Made by a program: the position numbers and the translations under genes. This document shows positions 22,795 through 59,033 of a stretch of 64,000 nt of DNA, one piece after another. The stretch is from Macrostomum lignano (Eukaryota): NCBI GenBank assembly GCA_002269645.1, contig NIVC01003252.1, positions 1 through 64,000 on the forward strand, given 5' to 3'. The notes beneath the pieces were generated by a model that was given only the letters and a program-made list of their open reading frames with translations, was not told the origin of the DNA and made no database searches. The number at the start of each line of letters is the position of its first letter. The first letter of the stretch is position 1.

Positions 22795-23440
22795 TAACTC
22801 ACAGCTTCATCCATACCAACTCAGCCTCACGGCTTCATCCAGACCCACTCAGCCTCACAGCTTCATCCAGACCCACTCAGCCTCACGGCTTCATCCAGAC
22901 CCACTCACCCTCACGGCTTCATCCAGACCCACTCAGCCTCACAGCTTCATCCAGATCCACTCAGCCTCACAGCTTCATCCAGACCCACTCAGCCTCACAG
23001 CTTCATCCAGACCCACTCAGCCTCACAGCTTCATCCAGACCCAATCAGCCTCACGGCTTCATCCAGACCCACTCAGCCTCACGGCTTCATCCAGACCCAC
23101 TCAGCCTCACAGCTTCATCCAGACCCACTCAGCCTCACAGCTTCATCCAGACCCACTCAGCCTCACAGCTTCATCCAGACCCACTCAGCCTCACAGCTTC
23201 ATCCAGACCCACTCAGCCTCACAGCTTCATCCAGACCCACTCAACCTCACTGCTTCATCCAGACCCACTCAGCCTCACAGCTTCATCCAGACCCACTCAG
23301 CCTCACAGCTTCATCCAGACCCACTCAACCTCACTGCTTCATCCAGACCCACTCAGTTTCACTGCTTCATCCAGAACCACTCAGCCTCACAGCCTCATTC
23401 AGACCCACTCAGCATCAAAGCTTCATCCAGACCCACTCAG
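22795..23440. repeat. 28-bp minisatellite (AGCTTCATCCAGACCCACTCAGCCTCAC), about 23 copies, derived from the end of WSC-PAN gene A
   Basis: On the minus strand the unit reads GAG GCT GAG TGG GTC TGG ATG AAG CTG TGA = EAEWVWMKL*, the last codons of the adjacent gene. Confidence 0.95.
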
Positions 23441-24200
23441 CCTCGCTGGCCAGCTCAGCGGGCACAGCGGTGAATCTCAGCAGGCGGCACATGCGGCTTG
23501 AAGACACGAAGGCGCAGCCCTGACAGTCCGGGCTTCGTTGGCAGGCGGCAGCGCACTGGATGGCGCTCTTGGCAGAGACGCTGCGGTGGGTGATGGAGCT
23601 CGATGAAGCCGATATGTTTGGCACGGCAGACACCGGCAGTTTTGTCAGGTTTGGCCCATCTGAAGTACAATATGATTAATACCATTTATTGATAAATTTC
23701 TGGAAACAAATTTAACTGTTTGATTCGTCCAAACTAAAATCAAGCTAGCTACTACCTGGCGGGTAGGAGAGCTCGTAGATGGAGTTTCTAAAATATCCAC
23801 CACACGGATGCTGAAAGATAGCTCCACTGCAATATTTAGAACATTCGTTTGCAGGTGCGGGGCCAAGTGACCCATAGGTGGAATCGCAGCAGCAGAAAGA
23901 GCCGTGGTTGACACCAAAGTAGCGAAAACGACCGAATGCGCAGATCCTGCTGCACATCTCCAGTGTCATTGTGGAGAGTTGGACAAAGCCTCCACCATGA
24001 ACTCCACCATCAGTTGAGTATGGGCCGATTGTCAGCAGCCCTTTTAGACCAAGAAGGTCCCGGTTGCTGTTATCGCCGTCTACGAAGCAGCCGATGTGGT
24101 TGAATCCAAGCGGCTGAGCGGGCACCGTCACAGCTGCACAGCTAGCAAGGCTGGCACACAGCAGCACGACAGCGAGTTCATTTACAATTTTTTGCGTCAT
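23415..24200 (-). CDS. Secreted WSC + PAN/Apple domain protein A (229 aa, intact)
   Basis: Exon 1 (24200-23756): signal peptide ...LAVVLLCASLASCAA, then WSC (HIGCFVD...MTLEMCSRIC...FRYFGV...CCC...ECSKYCSG...CGG...NSIY). Phase-1 intron (cca g|gtagt...ttcag). Exon 2 (23659-23415): PAN-type CAAACQRSPDCQGCAF...MCRLL. Confidence 0.88.
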
Positions 24201-25563
24201 GGTTGTATCGAACAGTCTGTATTTTTGTCCTACACTGAGGCCTTTAGTGTGCAGTTTTTATCGCAAATGTTTGGCTTATAGAGACAAAGTCTTATTTGCG
24301 TCTTATTTGAAAAAAAATTGCCTTGCCTGACAACGTTGTCATTGGCTAGCGAATTGTCTGACAAATGGAAACAGTATTGACTCCAACCCTTTGTTCAAAC
24401 ATAGGTCTAAATTTTCTGGTTTACTTTCTAAACATTTGGAGTCAATGGTTATATCTTAGCAGGTAGGTAGCTCTGTTGATAATGATGAGTCGATGCTTCA
24501 GTTTGAGCAACTGTTTATTTGACAGCTTTGACATCAATTGCAACATTCTGATGGCGATGTATATGAGCTAAGAGCTTTTACAACTTGCGTAAAGACATTT
24601 TAATAATTTGTTTTAACAAATCTATTTTTAAAAATATATAGTTAGCTAACTGCTCGTTTGGTTGATGTATTGAAACTGCTGCTCAGGGGGGTTCAAATTG
24701 AGTGCTTAAGAATGTAAATGACTTATTGACAATGACTTTTCTATCAAGCAACTAGAGGAAAAGATCTGGGGCGAAAAGCTTTCATGCAAACTGCATACAT
24801 GTAAGTGAGCTGGCTCACAAGGAAAACTTTACTTTCCAGTTGCTTTGTTTCCTGACAAAAAAATTCTGCATCGGATGACTACCTGAATCAAGACTTCCTT
24901 TCGTCTTTCCGTTGCGGACCTGCCGACACGACCAATTCCTATTTCCTGACTTGCCAGCGCTGCTACGAGCTACTAATAGAGACACGTGCTTTGGGAAGCC
25001 AACGCTTTTTCTTTTTGCACAATAGGAAAGTTTCCTGCTTCGAACTCAATGAATCTATACTGATTCAAACTCACGTGATAACGTCTGCTTAGACACAAAT
25101 TTTCAGAGGAGTTGAGCGCCTGACTACCTTGTTTTAGCGTAGCTATAGCAAGGGGACTACTTAAAAACTGTTGGTAAGTAGTCCTTGGCGTTTAGTTCTC
25201 TCTGCGTCATTCTTTTCTTTGACAATTACTTTCAGCTATGGCCCTAGTTTTAACGCAACGCACCTTCAATTTCTCTGATATCTATCACAGTAGTTTACAG
25301 TAATTTCCATTATGTACGCGCTTGAATCTTGAAAAGTACGTAGTAGAATTAAAATTAAAACTTAAAATAAAAGAATGAAATTGTAACGCTCTTATCGATG
25401 CCTAACATATGAGCGCATGGTGGCTCATAATAGTCTCCATTCTATTGATTTCAAAACAGAATATCACTCAGTGTTTTTTTGATTAGTGAGCAACGAGCTC
25501 GATCTATTCAAGTTTTTTTGTCAAGCGTGTTAGCCATTGATTTGGTTTCATCGGTTTCAATCG

Positions 25564-28530
25564 TCAAGTCAATATTTTCGAGACCAAACATCTCGGTTCC
25601 CTGCTCACCGATATCTGTCTGGTGCAGTTCAAACTTGTTCTGTTTTTCAGCACCCTGTCGTGGTCTTCACTGTTATCTAACGCAGTGTCCAGGCTAATTT
25701 CTAAAGCTTTCATTAATCTGGTACTAGTTACAAAGTCCGGTACACTGTAGAATCGGCGACTGCACCGCAGCTCTGACGTGGCTACAAAGAAAAACAACAG
25801 CCAGTCATCATCAACTTTTCGCGTGATGCAGACTTTGCAGAAGTTGCTGAGCTCCTGCCTTCGATGACATTTGGATTTCCAGTACAACTTGAATGCTTCT
25901 GTGGCAACTTCGGTGGTTAGAAGGTCGCTAACCAGAGGCTTTGCCAATTTTGACCAATCTCTTTCTTCCTGCATAAATTTAGTCTCGACATTCATGATGA
26001 GATCGTCGAACTCCCTTTGGTACTGCAGCTTATCCGTTGCCGTATTAAACGGGAACATTCCCTGGGTATTAGGCACTAAGGCTTTATTTTGTAGTTTCTG
26101 CAAGCCGCTGCTTGAGGCCAGCAGCTCAGCCAGGCCTAGCGTCAGTCCAGCAAAGTTAATGAGGTCCGGCTTCGATGCGTCGTACAGCGGTGGCGCCAGA
26201 GCAGTCAGTAGGATGTGAATGAAACCCCGAAAGTCTTCTGTCGTATAGACTTGTAAACTGCTGGGTTCCAGTTTTAATGAGATCAGATGAGGCAACTCAA
26301 AGATGCGGTATTTCTTACAGAACCTGGCGACATTCGCCCTCCAACGAGCAGTTGCGAAAGTGTAAAAACCGCACCTAAACCAGATTTTTCAGCCGATCCT
26401 CCCATTGACTTGAGTTTCCGATAGTTACGCAAGATTGTGTGACGTTGCTAGTTTAAGTGGTCCCGCAAAAGGGCCGTTGGACTATAGTTTCCCTTGCAAT
26501 TTCTCATTTTAATTTCTCCAATAGTTTATTTTAACGTTTACTTATAGTAGCGTGCAAATAATCTGGATCAACTGCTAATTCACTGTGTATTTGGTAGGCC
26601 TTGCGCTCGTCTGTGAATTTTGGCACGATCGATAATTTCAAATTCTCTCGCCAGCCAATGAAAACTCTCCGTGTTTTACGCTACCCATTTTGCGCTCTTT
26701 ATTAACCCCCGCCTGGTGGCGGGCTGGGGGCCTCCTCACTTCGCGGCTCTTGTTTTCCTTCTCCTGCCTTCTGTCTCGAGCCTCCTTATCTCTCGCCACG
26801 GCTCCTCTGTCTGGGCCAGCCTGTTTACACTGCCTGCCACTGTCTGCCACGGCTAGCGCCAATCTCACCACTACGCATCTGCCACTGCTGTGCTCATCGC
26901 CGTTAATCACCACAGTGCATGGCCTTGCATCACTCGCCTACCACTCGACTACAATTTCTAATTCACCTTCAATTCAAAAACATTGTTGCAGCCGCCAGTG
27001 TCCCAAAAGCACAATAAGTTCTGTATTAACATTAACCAAATTTGAATATTGATCTCAACAATAAAACAACTACGGCAGTTACCTGCCTTGTATGCCAAGT
27101 GCTCCGCTACACAATCCGCTTATCAAGACTTGACTCGATTCATTTTGGGACTACGACTTACGACAACTCTCGTAAAACGGCCCTTCTAAGGGTCATAGCC
27201 TCTACGCCAATAACGTGACAGATTGGATCATGATTTTTTAAGCAGCTCTTCGTCTTTGAGTTCTTTAAAGCCAGTAGAAAATATAATTGAGCTCACAGAG
27301 TTTCTAAAATATTCTTTATCGAATGGCCAAGCTGACTCATTCAAATTTGCTAGAAATACTTGTTTTACCTGATCAAACATGTCATTTACTCTATCAAATT
27401 CATCCTCTCGAAGATAGATGGATTTTTAGTTTTTTAATACCACAGGCTCCAAATTGAGCGTTGTCAATTTAAGGCACTGTTGCTTAATGTTATTATTAAA
27501 AATCCTTGTCAGGCTCAATATTCAGTCAACCAATAGTGCATTTACATATTCTGCGGCTCTAGGATTGTCAAGACGGAATCGCGCTGGAGCACTCTTCTTG
27601 AAATGATTCATGAAGTTGATAATTAGTTTCAGATCATCAGAGATAAACCGAATCTCTGGCGGACTTTTCACAGCTTCAATTGAATTTCCTATAAAAGCGC
27701 TGATAAACTTTGACCACAAAACGAATTTTTTGGTCTCATTATTGCAATTTAGGCTAAGCGAATCTATATATTGTACCTGTATTGACGCTGACGACCCGCT
27801 AGGAAAGTGGCTGCTCGGTTGACTTGTTGTGCGCCGGCAGTTGTAGAATGGGTTCTGATTTGCCAGAGATGTTTTTAAGCCAACCCGTGTCAGGTGTCTT
27901 CTTGAATATCTTCTGTAGGATTTTTCTAAGCGGCCGATAAATTTAATTTGCAAAAGCTTTTCATTACTAACTTCAGAACTATTGAATGACAACGAATTAG
28001 ATTTCATAGAGTTTTCAAATTTGTTTCCAATGCTGACCGAAAGCAGAGTTCTAGATCCGGTTTTAAGGATAGTCGCCAGTAACGTTTCCATTTGCAGGTG
28101 GCCATCGCGCCGCTCAACGTCTCGCAGTTGCTCCAACAGTACAGCCAGGCCCTGTTTCAGAAATTCCTTGGTCTGGGATTCCTCAATATGCATTTTGGAG
28201 CAGCTTTGGTACAGTATCCTGCTGAACTCTGCCAGCTCGATCATAAATGGTCTAGACAAGGCAGTCTTTGCTTTTCCCGACAGCATGTCTTCCAGTCGCT
28301 GCTTCACGGTGTCGAAAGCTTTCTCAATTTGGCGTTTGCTTGAACTGCTGATGCCATCGCAGCTCAGTTTGCGCAAGCTGCTGCAATTGCTAAGTTGAGC
28401 AGCCTTGCTCCATGAAGTCTCTCTATGGAAGGCTACATTGAGGCAGTCAAGTCGGGGGTGGTTGCAGTCGAGCTGGTTGTCAGCATTGACAGGCAAAGCA
28501 GAGAGATCAAAAGGCAAGAAAGCGGGGAGC
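25564..28530 (-). CDS. Large coding exons of an unknown protein (may join the 9-20 kb gene)
   Basis: Long non-repetitive ORFs 27522-28517 (331 aa) and 25564-26295 (243 aa), plus smaller open segments at about 27060-27480. No domain recognised. Confidence 0.55.
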
Positions 28531-29589: not shown

Positions 29590-30589
29590 AAGTACTAGCA
29601 ATCTACGCCCCCCGTTGGGGAGCCAAAGAAATGCAATACACGTTTTTTTAATAAGCTACATGTATCCTTGAAATCTTAAAAAATCTCCTGTCAAACCTTG
29701 TAAGCCTTGACATGTCAGTAATCCCCCCACAAGCTTTAACATATCAACTCCCCCCCTTGACATCTCAGCAATGCAATGGATTCCCAAATGAATCTCTTAA
29801 CTTCGACATGAAGCTTCTTTTATTTTTTACATTACGCTTTTTTTATCAGCGATCCCTCCCCTGAGGAGGCATCAAATAATGTAATAAAAAGTTTTCAATA
29901 AACTACATGTAGCTTCTGACTTTAGCTTTGAAATCTCATTTATACCCCCGTGAGCCTTGACATGTCAGCTATCCCCCCCCCCGTAAGCCTTGACATGTCA
30001 GCGATGGCCTCCATAAACCTTGAAATCTGAAAAATCCCCCGTTAACCTTGAAACCCGATAAAATATAACCCTCAACCCACACCTGACCTAAACCTAACTT
30101 TAACCCAACCTAAAGCCTTGAATCTCAGCAATTCTTCTCCCTAAGCCTTGACATTTTAGTGATTCCTTCTTTAAGAATCACAGCACTATAACGATTCCCT
30201 CGCTTTGACATCGTAGCAATTCCCAAATGAATCTTTTAACTTCGACATGACTTTTCTTTTATGTATACATAGTGCTACTTTTATTTTTTACATGACTCTT
30301 CTTCTATCAGCGCCCCCCCCCGTGGCGAGCCAACAAAAAATGTAATAAAAAAATTGAGTAAAGTAAATGAACTTTGAAGTAGCTTCTGACTGTTGCTTTG
30401 ACATCTCAGAAACGCCCCCATAATCTCAGTTATTCTCTGTGAGCCTTGACGTCTCAGTTTTTCTCCCTAGCCCAGCACTATAGCTTCATTTAATTTTTAC
30501 ATGACACCTTTCATGTCTAACATGACGCTTCTTTTATTCTACCATGATGCTTCTTAATTTTTTAAATGACACTTTCATTAGTTTTTAAA

Positions 30590-33480
30590 GGAGGCTTCTA
30601 TGATTTTTATATGACGCTTCTATGATATTTTACATGACGCTTCTATGATTTTTTATATGACGCTTCTATCATTTTTACATAACGCTTCTATGATTTTTAC
30701 ATGACGCTTCTATGATTGTTTACATGACGCTTCTATGATTTTTTATATGACGCTTCTATCATTTTTACATAACGCTTCTATGATTTTTACATGACGCTTT
30801 TATGATTTTTTACATGACGCTACTATGATTTTTACATGACGCTTCTATGATTGTTTACATGACGCTTCTAGGATTGTTTACATGACGCTTCTATGATTTT
30901 TACATGACGCTTCTATGATTGTTTCATGACGCTTCTATGATTGTTTACATGACGCTTCTATGATTTTTATATGACGCTTCTACGATTTTTGCAGGACGAT
31001 TCTATGATTGTTTACATGACGCTTCTATGATTTTTACATGACGCTTCTATGACTGTTTACATGACGCTTCTATGATTTTTATATGACGCTTCTACGATTT
31101 TTGCAGGACGATTCTATGATTTACATGACGCTTCTATGATTTTTACATGACGCTTCTATGATTGTTTCATGACGCTTCTATGACTGTTTACATGACGCTT
31201 CTATGATTTTTACATGACGCTTCTATGATTGTTTACATGACGCTTCTATGATTTTTTATATGACGCTTCTATCATTTTTACATAACGCTTCTATGATTTT
31301 TACATGACGCTTTTATGATTTTTTACATGACGCTACTATGATTTTTACATGACGCTACTATGATTGTTTACATGACGCTTCTATGATTGTTTACATGACG
31401 CTTCTACGAGTTTTTGCAGGACGATTCTATGATTGTTTACATGACGCTTCTATGATTGTTTACATGACGCTTCTAAGATTTTTTACATGACACTTCTATG
31501 ATTGTTTACATGACGCTTCTATGATTGTTCACATGACACTTCTATGATTGTTTACATGACGCTTCTATGATTGTTTACATGACGCTTCTATGATTTTTTA
31601 CATGGCGCTTCTATGATTGTTTACATGACACTTCTATGATTGTTTCATTACGCTTTTATGATTGTTTACATGACGCTTCTATGATTGTTTATATGACGCT
31701 TGTATGATTTTTACATGACGCTTCTATGATTGTTTCATGACGCTTCTATGACTGTTTACATGACGCTTCTATGATTTTTACATGAAGCTTCTACGATTTT
31801 TACATGACGCTTCTATGATTTTTTACATGACGCTTTTATGATTTTTAACATGACGCTTCTACGAGTTTTTGCAGGACGATTCTATGATTTTACATGACGC
31901 TTCTATGATTTTACATGACGCTTCTATGATTTTTACATGACGTTTCTATGATTTTTTACATGACGCTTCTATGATTGTTTCATGACGCTTCTATGATTGT
32001 TTACATGACGCTTCTATGATTGTTTACATGACGCTTCTATGATTGTTTACATGACGCTTCTATGATTGTTTACATGACGCTTCTATGATTGTTTACATGA
32101 CGCTTCTATGATTGTTTACATGACGCTTCTATGATTGTTTACATGACGCTTCTATGATTTTTACATGACGCTTCTATGATTGTTTACATGACGCTTCTAT
32201 GATTGTTTACATGAAGCTTCTATGATTGTTTACATGACGCTTCTATGATTGTTTACATGACGCTTCTATGATTGTTTACATGACGCTTCTATGATTGTTT
32301 ACATGACGCTTCTATGATTGTTTACATGACGCTTCTATGATTGTTTACATGACGCTTCTATGATTGTTTACATGACGCTTCTATGATTGTTTACATGACG
32401 CTTCTATGATTGTTTACATGACGCTTCTATGATTGTTTACATGACGCTTCTATGATTGTTTACATGACGCTTCTATGATTGTTTACATGACGCTTCTATG
32501 ATTGTTTACATGACGCTTCTATGATTTTTACATGACGCTACTATGATTGTTTACATGACGCTTCTATGATTTTTTACATGACGCTTCTATGATTGTTTAC
32601 ATGACGCTTCTATGATTGTTTACATGACGCTTCTACGATTTTATATGACGCTTCTATGATTTTTTAAAAGACGCTTCTATGATTTTTTACATGACACTTC
32701 TATGATTTTTTACATGACGCTTCTATCATTGTTTACACGACGCTTCTATGATTGTTTACATGACGCTTCTATGATTGTTTACATGACGCTTCTATGATTG
32801 TTTACATGACGCTTCTATGATTGTTTACATGACGCTTCTATGATTGTTTACATGACGCTTCTATGATTGTTTACATGACGCTTCTATGATTGTTTACATG
32901 ACGCTTCTACGATTTTTTACATGACGATTCTATGATTGTTTACATGACGCTTCTATGATTGTTTACATGACGCTTCTAAGATTTTTTACATGACACTTCT
33001 ATGATTGTTTACATGACGCTTCTATGATTGTTCACATGACACTTCTATGATTGTTTACATGACGCTTCTATGATTGTTTACATGACGCTTCTATGATTTT
33101 TTACATGGCGCTTCTATGATTGTTCACATGACACTTCTATGATTGTTTACATGACGCTTCTATGATTGTTTACATGACGCTTCTATGATTGTTTACATGA
33201 CGCTTCTATGATTGTTTACATGACGCTTCTATGATTGTTTACATGACGCTTCTACGATTTTTTACATGACGCTTCTATGATTGTTTACATGACGCTTCTA
33301 TGATTTTTTTACATGACGCTTCTATGATTTTTTACATGACGCTTCTATGATTCTTTAAATGACGCTTCTACGATTTTTATATGACGCTTCTACGATTTTT
33401 TACATGACGCTTCTATGATTGTTTACATGACGCTTCTATGATTTTTTAAATGACGCATCTATGATTTTTATATGACGCTT
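30590..33480. repeat. 22-23-bp satellite (TTTACATGACGCTTCTATGATTG), about 2.9 kb, about 125 units
   Basis: Directly visible; homogeneous core at about 32000-32900 with degenerate edges. Confidence 0.97.
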
Positions 33481-35760: not shown

Positions 35761-36555
35761 AGATATCCATTTATTTTTTACTGAAAATTACCTCCCATTT
35801 TAGCAGCGTTGAGCGTTCGAACTCTGTCGGTTTTGCTTTTACATGTTTTACTACTGATTGAAGTAGCATTTTAGCAGTATTTTAAATTATATTCCAAACT
35901 GACAATTTTATACAAGTAATATTCAAGGACAACTAGTGTTAGTGTTCCTAAGGACTAGTCTGCTGCATGACCGATGAATGCGAGCGTACAACAAGATGTT
36001 TTGCTTCTGTAATGTTTATGTAATTTTCTAAGTTTATGTAATGAGCAAGTACTTGTATCTGTAAAAGAAAGGAACTTCTTTGTTTTAAAAAGTAGCCTTG
36101 ATCTCAGTACCAGTAAAGATAAAGAAAAGCGTACCATGATGAATTTCTCGTAGGATACAATTGTGAGTTCTCGCCACCTGACGCGTATGCTACGAGCGTA
36201 CGACGTATATCTTCCTGTGGAGACTTCATCCTCTCCACGGGAGTTCAAAGCTGCGAGGTTTGATCGTCAAGTCTCTCGCTCCGTCGCACTTACTGCACTG
36301 AGCCTGGGAGCACAGGAGCCTGCAGTAGCCTCAGTGGAGCCTCAATAGACTAAAGACGTGGGAATTTTTGCACTCGCAACTTAGTTTTAAGGCTTGATTC
36401 CCATGGCAAGTCACTTCTTGTGTATACTGACTGAGTCGCTCGTTGCGCAAGTCATGCTTCGTGCGTAGTGAATTTGTGAAGCTGCTGTTGAACCTGGCTT
36501 TTAGAGAGAGAAGACTTATACAGCTAGCTATGGCGCATCTTGTCCTCCCGTCCTG

Positions 36556-37138
<583 letters not shown>

Positions 37139-39066: not shown

Positions 39067-39347
39067 GCGTGTGTCCCAGTACAGCAATGGCTCAGCAACA
39101 GCAACTGGAACTGCTGTCTGTCTTTTTGAGAAGGCGTGAAATTTTACAGAAAACTAAAAAGGCTTAACATTTTTATAATTTTTTTTAATTAGGACAACAT
39201 TTTTCATGCAATCAGACATGTTGTTGGAGGCAGAGTTACCCTGCCCGATCAAATCTAACGATGATTGATTTTAACTACTCGTTATTGAGCGACGAGTCAG
39301 CCAGTCAGTATAAATAAATCTGCCGATGTCAGTCAGTCAGTCAGTCA

Positions 39348-41026: not shown

Positions 41027-41750
41027 TCAGGCGTGCACGAAGAGAGTCCAGTTGGGTCCGGTCAGGCTGGCTGGCGGGTAGGCGAACGCCAGCAGGCGGC
41101 AGTCGAGCAGCCGCTTGGAGAAGACGACGGACGGCCTGGCAGTCGGCTCTGGCGCTGCACTTGGCCAGACAGTCCATGACGGATGGGGCATCGGCCGGCC
41201 AGGACGATGTCTTGCTGTTCTCCAGAGTAAAGTTAGTATTCTCCAGTTTGCAGAAATTTTTTGTCTGAAGAAGATATTGTTTAAAAAACATCAGCAACTT
41301 TGAAAGGCAACTGCATAACCAAAGCAGCAACTTACTCTGGTAGGTCAGAGCGAACACAGAGTTGATGCTCGAGGCTCCGCACATCTGTAGCGGATTTCCC
41401 GTGCACTGCCTGTTGCACTGACTATCGCTGAGCTGTCCGTGGAGTCCATAGGAGGTGCTGCAGAAGCACTGCCGGCTGACCTGCACTCCAAAGTAAGGGA
41501 AGCCGCCCAGAGAACAGACGTTAGCACAGAACTCGTGTGACATGTTGCTGAGACTCTGAACTATGCCGGCTGAAGCGAAAACGGTGTTCGGCCCCAGCTT
41601 AGTCATTCCAAGTAGTCCGGTGTCAGGTCTCTGTTCGAGTTATCACCATCTTTGTAGCAACCGAAGTAGGAGATCTTCACCATCCGGCCAGCTGCACAGA
41701 ACAAGGGAGCGCACAGCAATCCCGACTACCAAGAAAATACGCGTTGACAA
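41027..41750 (-). pseudogene. WSC + PAN/Apple paralog D with at least 4 frameshifts (pseudogene or unpolished assembly)
   Basis: Reconstructable as RIFLVVG-LLCAPLFCAAGRMVKISYFGCY...RDL-TGLLGMTKL...FCANVCSLGGFPYFGVQVSRQCFC...QCNRQCTGNPLQMCG...TYQ, donor at 41335, exon 2 from 41264, stop at 41027-41029. Indels at about 41722, 41624, 41258 and 41130; the start reads TTG. Confidence 0.75.
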
Positions 41751-44073: not shown

Positions 44074-44136
<63 letters not shown>

Positions 44137-46364: not shown

Positions 46365-46465
46365 TCTACATTGCTCAATAACACAAATTGTTCCAGTGGG
46401 ATTGAAAATAGAACCCCGGACCTTCGAAGCGCGAGTCGAACGCTCTGACCAATAGGCTACAGACT
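46365..46465 (-). mobile_element. 5' (tRNA-head) fragment of the same SINE
   Basis: Reverse complement GTAGCCTATTGGTCAGAGCGTTCGACTCGCGCTTCGAAGGTCCGGGG...ATCCCACTGGAACAATTTGTG matches 10405-10490. Confidence 0.7.
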
Positions 46466-47790: not shown

Positions 47791-48948
47791 CCTAACTTAT
47801 ACCGTATTAGTAAAGGAGAGCTAGACAAAAGACAGTCGAATCTGGAATGTTTAAAAAAAGGCTAGAGGATGCCCTATGGGTGAACATTATTCCCTCCTGT
47901 AATTGTTGCAACTAATTAGACAGGAATAAAAAAGTACATACCGGTATATTAGCGAGAAAAATTAAACGTGGGCAAACCTAGCAGCCACAAAAGGTCTAAA
48001 TGTGCACCCCGCCCCCCTCCCGCACACTGAAGGTGGTTAGCACTCGCGGGATCGTGCAAACCGATGCATACTATGTTATGTTCCTGTCGTGTTCAGCTGT
48101 TATGCTCGGTTCTTTACTCTCCTTCGTAGCTGAACTCTTCTAAGGCTCAACTGCAGGGACTCTAGAGCAGTCAGCGTGGATTTCTCCGTTTACGGCTGCT
48201 TCTGTCGCCACCGCTTCCTTCAGGGCCAGGTACCTGAGGAACGATTCATTTTTTGTTGCTCAGACAGTCAGAATACTACTTTTACTTGTAGGATACCATA
48301 GTCATTGGCCTACAAAACTATTTTAACGTCTACTCACCTACAAGTAAATTATATTTATGTGGAATATAATGCTTGGCCACCTGAAGCAGCAGGGTTTAAT
48401 AGTCGAATCGTTGCTTGTTGCGCACGTCATGCTCTGTGTGGTTAAAGGATGAAGCTGGTGAGTTCTTCAGCTAGCTATAGCAATTCTTGGCTTCCCATTG
48501 TGTACAGCTTAACGACACAACCGATGGTAGCATTCTGATGAAAATGTCTTTCTGACTTTCATGAAATGCATCGAAGAAGCCTTACCGTGACATCGCAACA
48601 ACTAGTGGAACGGACGCGCCAAAGTGCCTCCACTTGAGGTTGGCTATCAGCACAATGAGCGCTGATAAGCCCATCTCTAAGAACGTGACCAAGCGTGTCT
48701 ATGGGAAAAATCATTTTACGCTATGCCTGATATTTTCCCTACGAAGGTATGCATCATGGCTCGTTTATTGGCACGAGAAACTGCTAAGCGACTTGAACCG
48801 TTGCTTGTAAATGTATTCGCTTGACTCCCTTGATTCACTTGTGCATTAAACTGCATCCTAGTTACAGCACTTTTGTGAACTCCTTCTTGTAGCCAAATTA
48901 CCTGCAAAAGCATTCATTGTTAAATGATACAAACAAGCTAGGAAGCTT

Positions 48949-51039
48949 GACTTACTTACTTGACTTAGCTGCAGGGGGCTCCGTGCGTCCGGAAACAGCG
49001 AGGGGGCGTTGCCGCCCATTTCGCTAACCCCTGGCAACCACGGGCAGCTAGTGCTGCGGTGTCGCGCAGGGAGTTCCGGTGGCGCCGGCGTCCGCAGCGC
49101 GGTCCCCTTCCGGAGAGTCCAGGAGGGGATTGTCGCTCGCCCGGTAGCCCTTAGGTAGCGGACGAGCTGGCAGAGATTCTCGGGCCTGAAAACGTCGGAG
49201 AGGTCCGGGTTTGGGCCGAGGTAGGTGAGCCTGTCCTGAGTAAAGGCGGGGCATTCACAGATGAAGTGCTCCGCATTCTCGACACCGGAGAGGCAGAAAG
49301 GGCATTCCTCACTGCGGATTTTCTCCTGGAGGTAACGATGCCTGGCAAAGCAGCCATGACCCGAGAGGGCCATGGTAACCGCCCTGATGTCCCTGCGGTT
49401 GAGTCCAAGCAGGGCCCTGCGTAGGGCGGAGGAGGGACAGGGGACAGCCGCGCAGGATTGCTGGCAGTCGGGGGCGTTAGCCTACCTATCCCTGTGCTTA
49501 GAAGCCACCCACTGGTTGATCCGAGTGGTGACAAGGGCGATGGGGGTGGGGGCCACGGGCAGGGGACCAGTGAAAGAACCGGTCGAGCCAGCCTTGGCCA
49601 GGCGATCGGCCAGCTCGTTGCCGGGGTGGCCCGAATGCCCGGGGATCCACCTTAGGGACACCTTGTTGGAGGCGCCTAAGCGGTTGAGCTGCCCGATGCA
49701 GCCGAGGACTGTATGCGAGCAGGTGGTGGTGCGCTCAAGGGCGTGAATCGCCGCTTGACTGTCCGAGTGGAGGGTAACTTCCTTCCCCCAGACGCGCTGA
49801 ATGTACAGCTCCATGGCGCAGGAGCTGATGGCGAGAACTTCGTTCTGGAAGACGGTGGAGCAGGTGCCGGTGTGTTGGGAGAAGGTCGCCACAGTTCTCC
49901 TTCCAGACACGATGCAGTAGCCGTATCCAGAGGCGGAGTTGATTTGGGACCCGTCAGTGAAGCAGTGGATTTCATGGGGTTTCCAGTTGTCTCTCGCTTC
50001 ATGGCGTGGTGGAATGCTTGTTTTGAATTTGAGCGGGGGCAGAGCGTGGACGGGATTCCGTCCGAGAGGGTCAGCAGGCCTCTCGCTGCTTCCAGGTCTC
50101 GCAGGCTGAGGTCGCCATGCGGCCGGAGGTTCCGCTTTCTGAAGGCAAACTGCTTCTGGATTTGGACACCCGCGTCAAGCAGACGACATGTGGTTTTCAT
50201 TGCCTCCCCTCTAACAAAGAGGTCGAGGGGGGAATGTCCAAGAAGGAGTTCATGCCAGCGAAGGGCGTTGAGGGAGCCGCGCTCATGATAGCTCGACAAG
50301 CGCGGCCTTGCACCCTATTTAAAACCTCAAGAACCCCTTTCACCTCTAGGGCACTGTTCCAAATGAAGCCGGCGAAGGAGATGGCCGGTCTAACAATGGC
50401 AGTGTAAATCCACCAGAGGCGGCGGGGGGTGAGGCCCCAGGTAGCACCGAAAGCTCTGCGAATCTGCGCGAGAGTCGCGAGAGCTTTGCGGGCCTTGGTT
50501 TGGACGTGCGGGTTCCAGCTCAACCTGTGGTCGAGGGTGACGCCCAGACATCTAGTTTTTTTCTCCATGGCAACAGGTTTGCCAAAGAGGGAGAGCGGTT
50601 CGATCCTCCAGTTTCGGCGGCTGGTGAACATGATAGCCACGGTTTTAGACTCAGAGAACCTGAGACCGCAGCTTTGTGCCCAGCGCTCGGCACGGTGGAT
50701 GAAGGCTTGAAGGAGGTCCCTGAGGACCGCGGGCGATGGTCCAGTCACAGTGGCGGTAACATCGTCCGCATAGCCGACCTTCTGAACAGGGTCCGGATGC
50801 GGGCTGCAAAGCAGCTCGTCCATGACTAAGTTCCAGAGGATCGGGCTGAGGACTCCACGTTGCGGTCCGCCTTTCTGGACTTCCACGGAGCGTGAGTGTG
50901 CCAGGAGGTGCGAGGTGGCAGTACGATGGGAGACCATGTACATAATCCAGCGGGTGAGGTGCTCGTGCGTGCCCCGGGATTCCAGGGCTCGCTTAAAGGC
51001 TTCAAAGAGCACATTGTTGAAAGCACCAATGTAAGCACC
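48949..51039 (-). mobile_element. 5'-truncated non-LTR retrotransposon with RT + RNase H + C-terminal CCHC knuckle (LOA/Lian-like), inactive
   Basis: RT motifs GAFNNV, PQRGVLSPILWNLVMD, GYADD and RCLGVTLD; RNase H CFTDGS, LHSDSQAA and WIPGHSGHPGNELADRLAK; CPFC...[10 protein letters not shown]. (TAAG)-type 3' tail and exact 13-bp TSD AGCTAGGAAGCTT at 48936-48948 and 51040-51052. Frameshifts near 50230 and 50038, and an in-frame TAG at 49482. Confidence 0.93.
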
Positions 51040-51534
51040 AGCTAGGAAGCTTAGATGGCTTCTAAGAAGTGATTCGAATGCTTATGGCTTTTGGACGAAT
51101 GGACGAAACAACTAGTATCTAGTAAAAAAATTAGAGAACGCTACATGTATCTATAAGATAGCCTGCTTAAAGAAGTTTTCAAATCATCATTGCGGAAGGT
51201 AGGGCTTGAGGAAGTCGCCATAGTGACAAGATAAAAAGAGCTTTGGAGAGACAAAACTTGTCCCAAAAAACACCTTGAATATAAAAATATCCGGATGCCA
51301 GGGAAAAGAAACAATTAAACAAAGGAAAACTCTAAAAGAATATCGGTGCTTCCTTTCACACGCTACTCTTCTGTAGGCGATCACAAATGCCCCATGGAGG
51401 TGAAACCTCAGCCAATCCTTGCACAGCATTGGTAGGCGATTCTTCCATTATTGGCTTCTTCCAACTAATATACTCGCAATAAGAAGAACCTTTTCAGCAA
51501 CTGTTTGTTTAGTCACTCTCAGGAATTTTTCCCA

Positions 51535-52361
51535 ATGCTGAAACTCTGCGCTCTGTTGCTCTGCTGGGCATTTGGCTCCGGACGCAGCGCCGCTGCTGCG
51601 GTGCCGCCTCAACCGCTGGAGTTTCGCCACCTCGGCTGCTACGTGGATGGCGCTGATGGCAACCGAGATCTTGCAGGACTGGAGGGTGTCGAAAATTTTG
51701 GAGAGTTTGAGACTCACCCACTCGCCCCAGCATTTGGTTACGATAGCGCCAAGATGACATTGGAAATGTGCAGCCAGATGTGCTCTTACGGCCGATTTCG
51801 CTACTTTGGAGTTCAGCATCATAAGTTCTGCTGCTGCGGCTCGGCCTACGGATCGAACGGCATCGCACCAGCTGGCAACTGCAGCTCAAATTGCAACGGA
51901 AACTCGTCTCTGATTTGCGGTGGAGCTTCAAGAAATTCCATCTACGAATTGACTTACTCACCAAGTAAGCGTTTCGGATTAACGCAGCTCGTAGCGCGCA
52001 AACGCAGGTTATGTGAATTTAGCGAAGGACGACCTAAGAAATGAGTTTTTTAACCAACAATATTCGAATACATTTGACCCATTAGGATAAAAATGTTTTC
52101 ATCCACATTTCCGCAGTCGATCCGGTGATGCCGAAACTGCCAGTGACGTCTCTGCCGAACATCACAACCTCCGCAAGCTCCATCACTCACCGCAGCATTG
52201 CAACCAGCAGTGCAGTTGAATGCGCCACCCTCTGCCACGGCAGCCCGGACTGTCAGGGCTGCGCCTTCGTGCCTTCGAGTCGCATGTGCCGCCTGCTGAG
52301 ATTCGCCGCTGTGCCCGCTGAGCTGGCCAGCGACGCTGAGGGGGTCTGGATGAAGCTGTGA
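51535..52361 (+). CDS. Secreted WSC + PAN/Apple protein B (intact; closest paralog of A)
   Basis: Exon 1 51535-51964 (cca a|gtaagc): MLKLCALLLCWAFG..., WSC HLGCYVDG...MTLEMCSQMC...FRYFGVQ...CCC...NCSSNCNG...CGG..RNSIY. Exon 2 52117-52361: CATLCHGSPDCQGCAFVPSSRMCRLL...GVWMKL*. Confidence 0.9.
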
Positions 52362-52472
52362 GGCTGAGTGGGTCTGGATGAAGCTGTGAGACGTAGTGGG
52401 TCTGGATGAAGCTGTGAGACTGAGTGGGTCTGGATGAAGCTGTGAGGCTGAGTGACCGGTGGGATGAAGCTC
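52334..52472. repeat. 28-bp repeat spanning the stop codon of gene B, about 5 units
   Basis: Same unit as 22795-23440. Confidence 0.9.
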
Positions 52473-53829
52473 CGAGTCGTCTTAGCTCGTCTGAACGATT
52501 TTGACCCGCTATATATCTTTCGTGGAAAATATACAATCACTAATATCCTCACATTGTAACAATTTTGTGTTAAGACCTCAATGAAAAAGTATTTTTGTTC
52601 TTATTGTTTCTGCTCTAGTTCCTCAACGCTGCGTCCTAGACTAATGTTAGATTGCGCGACAAATGAAGCCGTTTTTAGCAAGGGACGGAGCGACTTTCAC
52701 TAAAGCGGATACTGTGTCCGTGGATCGAATGCTCGAATTCTCGGAACTTAAGCTGCTGCAGTGCTGTCAAGCCTGACTCATAACCGAAGTATAATCTGCA
52801 ACATTGAACAGTTGCCACTCTATGCGCCAGTGAGCATTTTTTCTTGGACTATTCTGAGATAAAAGATACGAGAAAACTGATCAGGTAGCTTTAATCCGCC
52901 CAACCCTCGCACACCGCTCCCCGCACTTCATTCATCAACTCAAGTCTGCCTTGGCGTAGCAAAGTTGCGTCACTCGCAAAGATTGAGCCAAGGGGATACT
53001 TTACAAGTACCTGCACTCTCAAAAGTGGCGACCACAGACGGAATCTTCCGTAATGGCGACTGAGTATAGTTTTTTTGTTATTCCGACTATTGTGCAATCA
53101 AGACAACTGAGTGAAACGTTATGAGAAAACTGTTTTCACTATTTTAAAACAAACAAACATTTATTCCCAATTTTTCAAGGAATTTTCTCAGAAAGATTTT
53201 TTGCCGCAGATTTGTAGAGGTTTAGCAGTCGAAGGCTCTGTTCCTTTGAGTCAATCGAATGATTGCATAGGCTTAAAATAATTATATTTCTTTATTATTG
53301 AAGTTTCCGGAAGGTTCTGCAAAAACGTGTGTCCTTATAACAAAACTTAGTTGTATGTACGTATTGCTTAAATAGTGGCTAAGCGCTACAAGTTCTTGTA
53401 AATTAATAATTTACTATGCATAAAGGGTGTAGGAACAATATTGTGAACTTGATGAAAATTTCAGGAAAAGCGTAGAATGTTTAATAGTACAATAATGGGG
53501 AAATTTCTACTATTCAGTTTGGGAAGGTCACTACAGATTGTCCAACATAAAAATACATGCGAGTTAAAAAAAGTTTAAACTTCAAGAAGGTAATTTATCG
53601 TCAAATTTCTGCGCAATTTTAAGTCTATGTGAGCGCCGTTTGTTGTGATAACAAGATGGGTATTGAATGATGATGATGGAAATGATGGATGATGGATAAT
53701 TGATAATGAAATCAACGTTTTCTTAATTACCAGTATCAACCTGATAAGAAGAACAAAGAACAAAGTGCAGAATGCAAAACTGAAAACTAATTTGCTATTT
53801 CTTTTATTGGTCATGAATCTATCCGTCTT

Positions 53830-54150
53830 ATGAAGAAATTAAACAAAATATTTCCTAGCAAATTTATAAAAAAATATCAGAATTTCATTTACTGTTGAAA
53901 AGGCCTAGAAGTACATCTGCAACCTAAACAGCCCAGTCCCTAAGCCTTTGTGCTTTTAAAAGTTTACGTGTTCTGATGATTGGCACAACTAAACGACATT
54001 TGTACACACGAGGAAAAGAACATAGGCTAAACAACTCACCAATCAATGAATGTCCACTTCATTGCAATGGATGTGCGAACAATTCAATTGACAGTCAGTT
54101 TGGAATAATCGACAAGTGCCAGACAGAAAGCAAACTTCTCACCCGTTGTA
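53830..54150 (+). mobile_element. Decayed Penelope-like GIY-YIG endonuclease remnant
   Basis: IGTTKRHLYTRGKEH...SPI...HC..C...F.IIDKC follows the PLE pattern YIGxTxRxLxxRxxEH; the upstream part is frameshifted. Confidence 0.55.
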
Positions 54151-57100
54151 GAGATCTCCGAAATACAGTAAAAAGCAAACTACTAGAAGTAGCTAGTAAG
54201 ATAAAAATGCGAAAAACCTAAAAATATAAATTCCACGCGGTCACACTATTTTGTAATATCACGAAAACAGCGAATGATTATTCTGCAACATTAAATTTTA
54301 GAACTCCAAATATGGTAAATGATACCCGAAACCTATTTTATTCGCAAAAATTCTATTCAATTTTCAAAGAGTCAACTTCCTAAAAAGTGAACCCGTCACC
54401 TCATCGAAATGACCTGATGCTAGCAAAATTTGCCTACAAATACAATCCAAAATCCGAGCTAAAATCTCAGACTCGCAGCAGCCTCAAAACATCTTGAGCT
54501 TTGCCAGAGCAGCAGAGCGAGGCTACATCTCTGAGGGAAATAGATACTGTTCGGTAAGCCATTGTTCAAGTCTTCGTTATTTTTATTATACCTACCGTCA
54601 CCTACCCTCGCATTTACCTTTCTTTTCATAATAATTAAGCATTTTCAAAACGTACAACTGGTTACCAAGCTCACTTTCCTCAATTTGCTTATATAAATAA
54701 TAACCACTTGTTCAAAATAAATTTATTTTGACTGACGATGATTGTGGACAATCGAAACTAGTCGCAAGTGATCTGTTTTTCGTTGTTTTTCCTTTTCAAC
54801 AAGATGGAAGTCGCTGTGGTACTTAAAAAAGCCCAAAATTTTTTGAAACGTGTGTGTTTAATATTTACCCAGATAATTACTCGTAATTATGGATTTATCC
54901 AGGTTTTCGCCACTCAAAAACTTCAAATGAAGTACGTCACAATCTTTGTTTGTTCAGCTGTGTTTGAAAATTAACTTGACGCAGATAAGACAGGTGTGAG
55001 AATTTAAACTATTTGAACATATTTATCGAAATGTGCAAATATGCTAGATGCATATCTGAAATCGATTTTGCGACTGTCAAGTGCAACCGACCGTTAAAAC
55101 AAAATCGAAAAGTGTTGACAGCTCCGGATTTTCCGCAAGCAAAAATGGCAAAAAGCTGTAACCCAGATTTTCTCAAGTGCTTAAAATCTATCCTGATGTG
55201 CTACCTCGAGGATTCTGGATCAGGTGATGGGGAATCGTTCATATCTGATTGCGTACAGGTTGCCCGTTGATAGGGGCACTGGATACATACTACATCACAT
55301 GCTTTATGCATTCGAGATGCAAATTTCCACGGATGTGATTGCCAAGCCGCTCTGAAAGTGTGCGCTGCCTGTTCAAGAGTATGTTCAAGAATTAAGTCGG
55401 GCCTTGCAGCCAGGCAGAAGCTAATCAGCTACGAGAGACGCCAGCGCTGAAGCAGGATGAAGCTGCGAAGTTTCAAATAAGCTGGATCGGCCCGGTGAAA
55501 GTGATCGAGAGGTGATCGAAGGGGCTTTTCAATGTAGAAAACCTATCAAAACGAAATAAATATCACAGTTTGTGCACTTTAACAACTTCTGTAAGTTCGC
55601 CGACGCAGCTCGACCTGCTACATCAGAGCCACCCGACGGTGTGTCACCATTGAACGAGCATAATGGGGGGGCACGGATTCTGAGAATGAGAGCGGGACTC
55701 TCAGTGACCGGCGCCACCCGAGAATCAAAGAGATAGCCGACCCCTCGGAAGATCACACTGAGCCCATGTGGACGCCTCACTGTCATGGCCAGCCTGTTTT
55801 ATTTTCATCGTGGGCACAGTCATCATAAAGCCTGTTAGAGTCTCATCATCTTTTTGCACGGAAATCACATACTAGTACGATCCTCACTGAAGTAGTAATC
55901 ATTGATGCATCATTAAGTTACTTTCATCGCATCATCAAGAAGTTTTCAACAGAACTCAAAGTTAATCACTTGATAGTTCTAGCTTTTGTCTTAATCAAAA
56001 CAATATGCCGATGGAGGGTATTCGGACTGGCATCGGTTGACGCCTCCAGAAGTAGTGAGGCGGAAACCATGGGAGATCAATGTGCCAGCAGTCATCGTCT
56101 CATATTGCGCGTCGTAAGCAATCTGAAAGAAAGAGAGCCTGTTATTAACGGCAGCTACACGTCAACTGCGCTATCGGTTGATAAAGCATATTTTAGCAGG
56201 ACAGCCGGACGGAACTGTGTCAGTGCTCAAAGCAATGAGATGGCTACGCCGCCCAGGCAGGCTGCTCGAGGTCCTCGTATTCTTTCGTGTTGTTACTGGT
56301 ATTGTTTTTTTTCCTACGCTAGTGAGGGTCAAGCTTCCTGAGGAAATGGCTCAGCAGCTGCGCGGCGTGCCGGTGCCAATGGCCACCTGCGCATCCTGCC
56401 AGCTTTAGCCGGTATGGCTGGCCGCTTGGCTTTAATCGTGTCCCTCCCCAGCCGTGCGCCCTGCCCCGTGATCTGTGCTGATTGGCTGCGGTCAGGCTGA
56501 CTGTGGCGCAGGTGCTGGACACGGCTATGGGCGGGGTTGTGATTGGCTGGCGGCCCTTTGCGCGGTTTTGCGGGCTTAGCCGGTGGTGCTGTCGGCCCCC
56601 ACCCCTAGGTCTGGGTCTTTATTTTTATTGTTACTTTGCGCATTTTTTCTCTCACCTCTGGTTAATAAATTCAGCTAATTATCTAGGAGTTTGCAAAGGC
56701 CCAAAAGAAACCCCCAACAGAACGAGTGAAACTCCAATATTAGTAAAAAATAATGCAGTACCGATTGAGTTGCCTGGATCCGCAAGAGCTTACTAGTCTA
56801 ACACTGTTATCGTAGCGTCGTGTGCGAGAGTTCTTTACTCAGCTTCTGGTAAGCAGTTTGCTTCAAGTCATTCTTTCCGCTAAGCTGGTGAGACTAAGGG
56901 GCCAACAGTTTCTTTTTTGCCAGGAGAGCGGAGCAGTCAGTTAAGGGTAAACTGGCGGACCACGTACGCATATTCAATACTGTACTATACATGTATTTTT
57001 GCGGTAGTCCGTGAATACGCACAAACAAGTGTCGCAACTCCTCCGGTAGCAACTCGAGTTCTGAGCGTCATCACACCAGAACAAGCTTTTTGCGTTCACA

Positions 57101-58314
57101 GAGAGTCATTTCGCCTGTCTGTATTCCTATCAGTAATATGTAGAGCGTCACTACGCCTGTTTTTACTTATTCATTGCACTTGGGTTGAGCGCCCGAACCG
57201 AACCGACTCCAGTTACATACTACAATATAGTGTTGAAAGTTACAGATTCCTTCATGCAAATTCTCCAAAAGGCTGTTATGGATATCATCAAGTTGCCTCT
57301 TTTCCTGAGGCTCTTAACATATGTAGGAGGAGGGTACAACTGAACTGAACTGAATATTAAACTTTATTAGAGTTAGCTCGTAATACAATGCGTATATGTA
57401 AAAGAGATTTTTGAATCGGGAGCTCGTGATATGCAATTTACGAGCGTATTTTTTAGAGCATGGAGACTGCTATGTGAATCAGCATTCAGAAATTATAAAT
57501 AATTTGTGACTCGCGCTACCGCAGAAAATATTTCAGTTTTCTTTGAGACAGAATATAAAATACGTTCCGCAACAGTATCCTCAAATCTTGTCGAATTACG
57601 GATTCAAGGAGCTGAGGAAAGCATTTTAGATGACTAAACAAATACCAGTAGTGGGCAGCATAGCAGACCGTCTCGAATTCGAGATGGAGAAGTTGATATT
57701 GATCCACCAAAGCACGACACTTACTTGCTGTCCATCATTCTTAGTACAATGCAAGGAGTGTTCGATACTCTCACCAAAACGCAGTGAACTCACAAACAAA
57801 GGAGTCCCTCCGGAGCGGCTCGTTCGTCGCTGGTGAGGGGATGTGGCATCACAAGAGTGCATTGCTGATATGGCCATGTGATGAGCAGTCCGTCGATGGG
57901 ATTTTCCAATTAAGACAGTTTCATTTCTTGCGCCTCAAAACTAAATAGAAATACACAGACTTGAGCACGACTCTGGGCATCGATGCCAATTTAGTTTTTA
58001 CGCCATGGGCCCCAGAGTGTTAAGCCTCCCGGCACGACACAAACCGCCAGCGTCAGGTAGAGCCTCAGACTGCAGGACATCAGAAAAAAAGGCAGCCAAA
58101 GCAAGACCGCGGCAACACTGCAGATCCTCACAGCCTGTCGGCATCAGTCGACACGCATACCCACTACACTGAACTCTTATTAGTGCACTGGCTCTTATCC
58201 AACCAGATCGTTTCTAGAAAGCCGGTATAAAAGCAAACAAAGACAGCTTTAATCATCGCTTCCTACACTCGTATGAGCAGCAGCAGAATTGAAATCCCAT
58301 CTGCTCAAGTAACT

Positions 58315-59033
58315 ATGCTGAGGACCATCGCCTGCATTGTGGGTCTCGCCGTCCCGGTGCTTTGTGTTGCCGGTAGAGTAACTCAGATGTCCTACATTGG
58401 CTGCTATGTGGACAACGAAGGCCGAGACCTGAGAGGACTCTCTTCAGTGAGCAAAATCGGACAGTTGAGCATCGATAAGAGTACTTTCTCACTGAAAAGC
58501 GAGAGTATGACGCACGAGCTCTGCACCAGCGTCTGCTCTTTGGGCGTCTTCCCGTACTTCGGTATTCAGGTCGGTAAGGAGTGCTTCTGTGGCACCTCCT
58601 ACGGATCTCTGGGAGCTGCTAGCGAGACCGACTGCAACCGCGTTTGCACTGGGAACGGAGCTTCTAAATGCGGAGGCCCGTGGCGCAATTCCGTATTTGC
58701 TTTGACCTATCCGAGTAAGTTTTTATTACAACGATTTTATTAGAGTTTTCAAATGTGATTTCGGCACATTTTGTAAAAGTTTGTGTAATTCTTTTAGAGA
58801 AACAGTACTTTGAGCAGTCGCAGAGGCCCAACCAGACAGTGGAGTCCATACACAGCACCTACTGGACCAGCGCTGCCCGAACCGACATCGAGTGCATGTT
58901 GCTGTGCGAGGCCTCAGCTGACTGCCAGGCTGTGATTTTCTCTGGCCAGCAGCGCCTGTGCCACTTGCTGAGGTTCGCCTACCCGTCTGCAAGCCTGAGC
59001 AGCACCGATGGAGACTTCTTCGTTCGTGGCTGA
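58315..59033 (+). CDS. Secreted WSC + PAN/Apple protein E (intact)
   Basis: TATAAAA at about 58227. Exon 1 58315-58714 (alternative in-frame ATG at 58273; ccg a|gtaagt): MLRTIACIVGLAVPVLCVAG, WSC YIGCYVD...MTHELCTSVC...PYFGIQVGKECFC...DCNRVCTGNGASKCGGPWRNSVF. Exon 2 58798-59033: CMLLCEASADCQAVIF...LCHLLRF. Confidence 0.9.

Follow-up and report, generated by a model that had tools for sequence, protein, structure and literature searches.

The first 64,000 nucleotides of the 104-kb contig NIVC01003252.1 of Macrostomum lignano (DV1 assembly; positions 1-64000, hereafter the window) carry the initial half of a tandem gene array. Each gene encodes a WSC module followed by a PAN-type module, and we refer to the group as the WSC-PAN family. 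The comparison with the contig showed 100% identity over window positions 48324-64000, with the numbering unchanged. A reading of the sequence alone had proposed five paralogs (A to E) in this stretch, and a tblastn search of the window with the exon translations of A and C returned exactly those five loci, with E values for exon 1 ranging from 1e-16 to 1e-40. The five paralogs are real, the matches lying far beyond chance. We are highly confident of the structural and evolutionary part of the interpretation developed below, namely that these genes encode bi-module proteins of the PAN/Apple fold class, and the family evolves via duplication, pseudogenisation and patchy gene conversion. The best overall explanation, according to which the array encodes extracellular binders that would most likely act in the male germline, is held with moderate confidence.

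Gene models in the window

The five copies have one layout in common. Exon 1 encodes a putative signal peptide and the WSC module and exon 2 encodes the PAN-type module, while the intron between them is of the GT..AG type, in phase 1, 71-152 nt long and located immediately 3' of the Y-x-P/Q codons in all five copies. Both the domain order and the placement of the intron had been deduced beforehand from the letters, and they are borne out by the gene models and by Pfam. The models are listed below, with scores in bits referring to the Pfam profiles WSC and PAN_1.

23756..24200, minus strand: gene A exon 1, signal peptide and WSC, A/B subfamily; intact, ATG at 24200
23756/23755, minus strand: donor of gene A exon 1, CAG/GTAGTA; WSC 35.3 bits
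23415..23659, minus strand: gene A exon 2, linker and minimal PAN core, ending in ...AEWVWMKL and a stop
23660, minus strand: acceptor of gene A exon 2, TTCAG/, phase 1, intron of 96 nt; PAN_1 25.4 bits
38400..38739, plus strand: gene C exon 1, C/D/J type, signal-peptide-like segment and WSC; 63.5 bits
38831..39066, plus strand: gene C exon 2, PAN-like module, acceptor TTTCAG/, intron of 91 nt; PAN_1 20.4 bits
~41719..41336 and 41264..41039, minus strand: copy D, C/D/J-type pseudogene, intron of 71 nt
51535..51964, plus strand: gene B exon 1, signal peptide and WSC, A/B subfamily; intact; WSC 44.6 bits
52117..52361, plus strand: gene B exon 2, PAN core, ending in ...GVWMKL and a stop, intron of 152 nt, phase 1; PAN_1 24.4 bits
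58273 (or 58315)..58714, plus strand: gene E exon 1, E/H type, signal peptide and WSC; intact; 52 bits
58798..59033, plus strand: gene E exon 2, PAN core, intron of 83 nt, phase 1; PAN_1 22.3 bits

The two subfamilies recognised in the sequence-only reading are also recovered, A and B being characterised by CCC and a WMKL end, and C, D and E by PYFG[VI]Q, CFC and F[AV]YP.[AT]SL. Within the window, only A, B and E are intact. In gene E, a second ATG at 58315 sits directly before the hydrophobic core. The best protein match of E is the NCBI model BOX15_Mlig003596g1 of M. lignano, which incorporates E exon 1, and the published model P0001 leaves this exon at the predicted donor. Applying the splice logic of the family to another locus exactly reproduced the NCBI proteins P0003 and P0004. 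BOX15_Mlig003596g1 itself is a chimera of gene E exon 1 and exon 2 of the paralog H, located ~15 kb downstream. In the stretch of the NCBI record that we designate L001 (L001 10001-25784 corresponds to record positions 58324-74107), no other gene is called for B, H, I or J; A and C lie outside this stretch.

The lesions of C and D were defined by reference to their relative J', the intact copy nearest to D, which belongs to a duplicated locus (NIVC01000622.1, see below). In gene C, the frame is open from 38277 and can be spliced, yet no in-frame ATG is found upstream of the signal-peptide-like segment, each of the two ATGs of J' having been lost in C through substitution. A start at an upstream ATG (38314) followed by a short intron was considered and rejected, the candidate acceptors at 38437 and 38441 being out of frame. 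The spliced leader of M. lignano ends in ATG, and trans-splicing at an in-frame AAG (~38292-38294) could in principle start C, which would place ~50 extra residues ahead of the hydrophobic core. Copy D is a pseudogene, since in comparison with J' it has lost both ATGs, carries six indels (-2, +2, +3, +1, -3 and +4) and is interrupted by a TGA at 41605-41603. It also shows a CCGT duplication at 41134-41127, and its F[AV]YP motif can be read only across a frameshift.

Two PAN-fold modules of different type

With Pfam cut-offs of 27.8 bits for WSC (PF01822) and 21.4 bits for PAN_1 (PF00024), the WSC module passes in 5/5 window copies (35.3-63.5 bits). PAN_1 is passed by A (25.4), B (24.4) and E (22.3), C (20.4) and D (16.3) remaining below, and in each copy the PAN_1 alignment is confined to profile positions ~16-57 of 76. 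The scan of A to E returned WSC and PAN only, with no Kringle or CUB domain, Ser/Thr stalk, transmembrane segment or sulfotransferase partner. No hydrophobic C-terminus is seen in the A to E models, in which the chain ends ~45 residues past the PAN core. The N-termini look like putative cleavable signal peptides, as judged from their sequence and from low model confidence over residues 1-20, and removal of this segment would leave a mature protein of ~190 residues.

In a family alignment of 19 members, exon 1 contains eight cysteines that are invariant or nearly so (C30, C70, C74, C90, C92, C107, C111 and C119 in the numbering of E) together with a CGG motif. The pattern, in which a helix C-x3-C is paired with a strand C-x-C, matches that of yeast Wsc1. 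Exon 2 contains four cysteines spaced C-x3-C-x5-C-x11-C, invariant in 19/19 sequences, which would form the disulfide pair joining the helix to the central strands. The Apple domain of the factor XI and prekallikrein type has in addition a third disulfide and an N-to-C bridge, and exon 2, with four cysteines, has neither. Because of this cysteine count and of the partial profile match, exon 2 is described as a PAN core rather than as a full Apple domain. The assignment of exon 2 to PAN/Apple made from the sequence alone is therefore upheld as regards the fold model and the PAN_1 scores of A, B and E, and is not upheld as regards the scores of C and D and a complete Apple domain.

Structure predictions agree with this division; in the structure and profile inputs for E and B, one split-codon residue was dropped from each. 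The AlphaFold model of full-length E has a mean predicted local distance difference test score (pLDDT) of 76.5, with residues 1-20 below 50, and its first Foldseek matches are Kremen (5fwt, E value 4e-6) and yeast Wsc1 (7pz2, E value 2e-4, template modelling (TM) score on the target 0.72). The AlphaFold2 model of exon 2 only reaches a pLDDT of 93.2 and a predicted TM score of 0.82. Among its top 50 PDB matches there are no WSC structures and almost all are of the PAN/apple fold, in which a five-strand sheet packs against one helix, the best with a probability of ~1.0; they include the SML-2 lectin, the N domains of plasminogen and hepatocyte growth factor (HGF), the apple domains of MIC4 and an Eimeria PAN module. 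In a search with the family profile, the WSC half matches Kremen1 (2.5e-11) and yeast Wsc1 (3e-8), and the PAN half gives only E values of 0.1-0.2, all such weak matches being PAN domains. The structure of Wsc1 has established that WSC is itself a PAN/Apple fold with the common helix-to-strand disulfide pair (PMC9024836), and the protein therefore combines two modules of the PAN fold that differ in type, the second being a stripped-down four-cysteine core, devoid of the third or Apple-type disulfide and followed by a short conserved tail.

Known proteins resemble one half or the other. Kremen1/2 and yeast Wsc1 have the WSC domain family, the fold, the eight-cysteine pattern and the CGG in common with the WSC-PAN proteins. 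Kremen differs by its Kringle-WSC-CUB-transmembrane organisation and binds proteins, and Wsc1 senses stress at the membrane and has a stalk rich in Ser/Thr, whereas the WSC-PAN proteins have no membrane anchor and carry a family-specific variable insertion of ~30 residues after strand 1 of the WSC module. On the side of exon 2, the model superposes on Sarcocystis SML-2, Toxoplasma MIC4 and the HGF and plasminogen N domains with TM scores on the query of 0.55-0.66 and a probability of ~1, the C-x3-C...C...C hairpin core being common to all; exon 2 differs from them by having two disulfides only, with neither a third nor the Apple N-to-C bridge, and identity is 15-20%.

Extent of the array and a duplicated locus

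The array runs past the end of the window and comprises at least 11 copies over ~61 kb of the same contig, in mixed orientation and with interleaved subfamilies. Six more copies or fragments lie downstream of the window:

Copy F, downstream of the window: pseudogene with several stops
Copy G, downstream of the window: frameshift in exon 2
Copy H, downstream of the window: intact
5' fragment, downstream of the window: contains a stop
Copy I, downstream of the window: intact, A/B type
Copy J, downstream of the window: intact, C/D type

At least four copies, namely D, F, G and the 5' fragment, are thus dead; C, in addition, lacks a start. The array of five genes described from the window alone was correct in its count for that stretch; it is part of a larger array, one of the five is a pseudogene and another is without a start codon.

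The array locus has a duplicate, NIVC01000622.1, with 87-96% DNA identity (NIVC01000622.1:106181-126893 compared with window positions 21035-24715 and L001 24360-35783). This second locus carries just five copies (A', H', the fragment, I' and J') and passes from the equivalent of window position 24715 directly to the sequence upstream of H; it therefore lacks a 48-kb block with six copies (C, D, B, E, F and G). Because B and C are old paralogs, with a synonymous divergence (dS) of about 1, a deletion from the duplicate or a long-standing polymorphism is as likely as an expansion in the first locus. In A', an intron of ~5.5-6 kb replaces the 96-nt intron of A.

Constraint and gene conversion

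For intact pairs, the overall ratio of nonsynonymous to synonymous divergence (dN/dS, Nei-Gojobori) is 0.23-0.6, from which we conclude that the coding sequence is under constraint. No long region with dN/dS above 1 was detected in the pairs examined, and at the level of pairwise dN/dS no positive selection was detected in the family. A value of 2.6 in one 70-codon patch of the pair K1-K2 was discarded as not meaningful, the dS of 0.02 in this patch corresponding to a single synonymous difference. The ratios that had been suggested as a check thus point to constraint, and the rapid diversification proposed in the sequence-only reading is not supported, or is at least overstated, dN/dS being 0.2-0.6 and much of the mosaic appearing to be gene conversion.

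This mosaic is visible in the distribution of dS along the genes. In the pairs A-B, A-I, B-I and C-J, the last 47 codons have a dS of 0.21-0.24, compared with 0.9 to more than 2 or saturation elsewhere. DNA identity between A and B rises from ~65% to 80-95% at this homogenised 3' tract and stays high into the 3' flank, and the GC content at third codon positions is 0.72-0.89 in the tract versus 0.57-0.68. Between E and H, no difference is seen over codons 1-26, over codons 97-133 or in the intron, but dS is 0.40 over codons 27-96, and K1-K2 show the reverse of this pattern. We read these dS mosaics as patchwork gene conversion. Within each subfamily it appears to homogenise the last ~140 coding bases, and it, not diversifying selection, would account for much of the mosaic in the sequences. 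The most variable region of the protein is the insertion after strand 1 (mean pairwise identity 0.43-0.49), and the most conserved is the PAN core with the tail (0.80-0.87).

In the A/B-type genes, the homogenised tract continues straight into a 28-bp minisatellite, found at two places in the window by Tandem Repeats Finder (TRF):

22798..23444, minus strand: 28-bp minisatellite, unit GCTGAGTGGGTCTGGATGAAGCTGTGAG, 23 copies, 3' of A
52335..52454, plus strand: 28-bp minisatellite, unit GCTGAGTGGGTCTGGATGAAGCTGTGAG, 4.3 copies, with its first bases within the terminal part of the B coding sequence

The first unit corresponds to the last ~9 codons and the stop of an A/B-type gene, and the C-terminal peptide matches each unit (tblastn). 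Outside the window, paralog I ends in WVWMKLGG and a stop, and its 3' flank translates similarly, as judged from translation alone.

These data bear on whether the array is largely a decaying and functionally unimportant relic of a duplication burst in a repeat-rich, recently polyploid genome. Such a relic would fit with 4-5/11 copies being dead or without a start, with gene B being unannotated in the NCBI record, with the absence of the 48-kb six-copy block from the duplicated locus and with the transposons and satellites interspersed among the genes. However, in the intact copies the frames remain open, the splice sites and the full set of 12 cysteines are kept, and dN/dS stays at 0.2-0.6 for dS values of 0.9 to more than 2, which neutral decay would not keep; related copies (P0002-P0004) are moreover annotated in the NCBI genome record. 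We regard this explanation as improbable. The same mode of birth-and-death with conversion, pseudogenes and copy-number differences is found in other lineage-specific tandem families of secreted reproductive or recognition proteins, to which the WSC-PAN family is compared by analogy only. Its evolutionary behaviour is a tidy example and not a surprise, and the family is otherwise an ordinary lineage-specific expansion of known domains.

Taxonomic range

Word-indexed protein searches with the family returned M. lignano proteins and one weak fungal WSC protein, and nothing else. A profile search of 1.84 billion representative sequences gave 9859 matches, WSC being widespread. Among the best 150 of these, all full-length single-unit matches that were looked up (~200-230 residues) are from M. 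lignano, and the other looked-up top matches are multi-WSC proteins from fungi, a diplonemid or metagenomes, or longer multi-WSC proteins of M. lignano. No single-unit WSC-PAN protein from outside Macrostomum was found among the best 150 of the 9859 matches, and weaker relatives may score lower. One metagenome protein of 676 residues has two WSC and a PAN_4 domain, and one M. lignano entry of 1074 residues gives four WSC and five PAN_1 matches, which we read as a probable read-through model of another array.

Fungal WSC proteins dominate the matches outside Macrostomum. The soluble WSC lectins of fungi (for example Serendipita indica WSC3) and the WSC modules attached to glycoside hydrolases and copper radical oxidases resemble the family in being secreted, and they have a carbohydrate-binding role (PMC9024836). 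They differ from it by their several tandem WSC repeats or catalytic partner and by having no C-terminal PAN core.

Within the genus, orthogroup OG0000005 (Brand et al. 2020) comprises 92 sequences of three species (M. lignano, M. spirale, M. hystrix); it holds Mlig003596.g1 together with two sister genes. The family is expanded in the genus Macrostomum and has so far been seen nowhere else. The literature and protein searches turned up no named or characterised family of this architecture, and for the single-unit form the protein searches gave uncharacterised Macrostomum proteins only, in agreement with the sequence-only reading, which had recognised no named family of exactly this architecture. 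The family is new as a description; its members are already catalogued in the databases under the name 'WSC domain-containing protein' and belong to an orthogroup that has been published.

Expression and possible functions

The sole published expression annotation that covers gene E is the label of OG0000005, which is Testis together with germline_FACS (Brand et al. 2020). The members of the orthogroup are classed as Non-Specific, Other or Testes, the final label being Testis; none of them is a tail or ovary member, and the orthogroup carries no in situ annotation. Six family identifiers were searched in Grudniewska et al. 2018 and none was found. Because the only published expression label covering gene E is testis/germline, the likeliest place of action would be the male germline, where the products would be testis- or sperm-associated secreted proteins. 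They are predicted to be soluble extracellular binders of glycans or of glycoproteins and other proteins, in which the variable WSC loop would set ligand preference and the conserved PAN core and tail would provide the docking part for a common partner. A reproductive or testis function is proposed tentatively.

Several points weigh against this interpretation. The testis label is attached to the orthogroup and not to the gene, one testis-class member being sufficient to produce it, and other members are classed Non-Specific and Other. The label is consequently a hint and not a finding, as it is given at the orthogroup level and may rest on one member. The signal peptides are putative, on the grounds of sequence and model confidence given above, and gene B has no annotated model in the NCBI record (within the L001 stretch). 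Finally, selection acting on synonymous sites or on an RNA element, and not conversion, may be part of the reason for the low dS at the 3' end.

WSC proteins have a precedent in the reproduction of this species. Many of the 76 prostate-limited transcripts of M. lignano have WSC or 'fungistatic metabolite' proteins as top matches (Weber et al. 2018 Table S1), and two WSC-type candidates among them have knock-down phenotypes (PMC5977470, PMC6953679, bioRxiv 10.1101/734301): knock-down of Mlig-pro46, which is WSCD2-like, reduces sperm competitive ability, and that of Mlig-pro63 reduces the propensity of the partner to suck. The WSC-PAN proteins could likewise be made in the prostate and transferred at mating as seminal-fluid proteins, an explanation to which the frequency of WSC-type matches and the two phenotypes lend weight. 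Two prostate-limited transcripts match an oyster protein annotated 'Plasminogen', which hints at PAN from the name alone. The prostate-limited candidates, among them Mlig-pro5, Mlig-pro46 and Mlig-pro63 (Weber et al. 2018, Patlar et al. 2019), are small WSC proteins of the same species, from loci that are likewise multi-copy, and they are treated as secreted and fast-evolving. They are nevertheless other genes, several of which have one or two WSC with no PAN reported, and they are expressed in the prostate in contrast to the testis/germline label of the orthogroup of E. The 12 recovered family gene identifiers showed no overlap with the 18 candidate-to-gene mappings (0/12), the remaining 58/76 candidates standing outside this comparison. 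The published knock-down primers have no match in the window, and none of the 12 identifiers occurs in the in situ pattern transfer table. OG0000005 also has no tail-region member, which would have given it the label positional_mix. The proposal of a seminal-fluid system made from the sequence alone therefore has a WSC precedent in the species and finds no family identifier among the mapped candidates or in the transfer table, and we consider it unlikely.

A role in innate immunity, as microbe-recognition lectins such as beta-glucan binders forming a tandemly expanded pattern-recognition repertoire, would accord with the binding of beta-glucan by fungal WSC and of galactose by PAN/apple lectins (PMC9024836; SML-2 matches), as well as with the tandem expansion, the variable loop and the difference in copy number between the duplicated loci. 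This role is not favoured by the only published label, testis and germline, nor by a dN/dS below 1 throughout, and its probability appears low.

Small secreted cysteine-rich proteins with lectin modules occur in adhesive, mucus and epidermal secretions. The WSC-PAN proteins could be components of them. The adhesive organs are in the tail region, for which OG0000005 carries no label, and no link with adhesion or mucus turned up in the Macrostomum literature searched, which makes this the least probable of the explanations considered. Ahead of it among the alternatives stand, in decreasing weight, prostate seminal-fluid proteins, immune lectins and a mostly decaying array.

If the products do act in the male germline, the family could constitute a Macrostomum-specific gamete or mating recognition system, in which the WSC insertion would diversify the partner or glycan specificity of the paralogs and conversion would keep the PAN core and tail uniform. 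Conversion in the A/B-type genes may then be promoted by a minisatellite grown from the last codons of the gene itself, and even the two duplicated halves of the polyploid genome would differ in their number of copies. This extension is speculative and, at present, improbable.

Other sequence around the copies

The array also contains mobile and repetitive sequence that does not belong to the family. One element lies upstream of gene B:

48858..51012, minus strand: degenerate fragment of a retrotransposon without long terminal repeats (non-LTR), reverse transcriptase and RNase H with broken frames; Pfam RVT_1 45.9 bits, RNase_H 42.9 bits

It ends ~500 bp upstream of the start of B, and local GC content there is 0.53-0.54 versus 0.44 for the window. 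An intact piggyBac-type transposase frame of 553 residues lies at 61871-63532 on the minus strand (DDE_Tnp_1_7, 230 bits, and a C-terminal zinc finger). A 21-bp minisatellite with the unit CAGGCACTCATTTTAGCGCCG is present in 27.7 copies at window positions 16269-16849; it recurs at L001 27405-27705, in the interval between H and the fragment, and at 12455-12687 of a further stretch, L002, in the interval between K1 and K2, and may belong to a mobile element travelling with the arrays. Between A and C, a 3-kb minisatellite (30520-33480, 130 copies, TRF period 23, printed consensus ACATGACGCTTCTATGATTTTT of 22 bases) lies in an AT-rich stretch with a GC content of 0.34. The same interval contains two long reading frames of 243 and 331 residues (25564-28517, minus strand), for which no significant Pfam match was obtained, Peptidase_M13_N being sub-threshold only; they may represent an unrelated multi-exon gene or the remnant of a mobile element. 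Long simple repeats at 6412-8550, 36553-37139, 39328-39750 and 43388-44844 comprise (CTGT)n, reaching 535 copies, as well as (GTCA)n and a CT-rich tract of 1.5 kb, and are the cause of long spurious frames in the list of open reading frames.

Significance

The reference annotation omits most copies of the array and fuses two of them into a chimera, and short-read estimates of expression for the family will be confounded by the paralogs and by the conversion tracts. The homogenisation of the 3' end beside a minisatellite derived from the coding sequence offers a neat small case for the seeding of conversion tracts. Sexual selection in hermaphrodites is studied with M. lignano as a model, and WSC proteins are already prominent among the seminal-fluid candidates of this species; a large and separate WSC-PAN family would represent a concrete, overlooked set of reproductive candidates in this animal.

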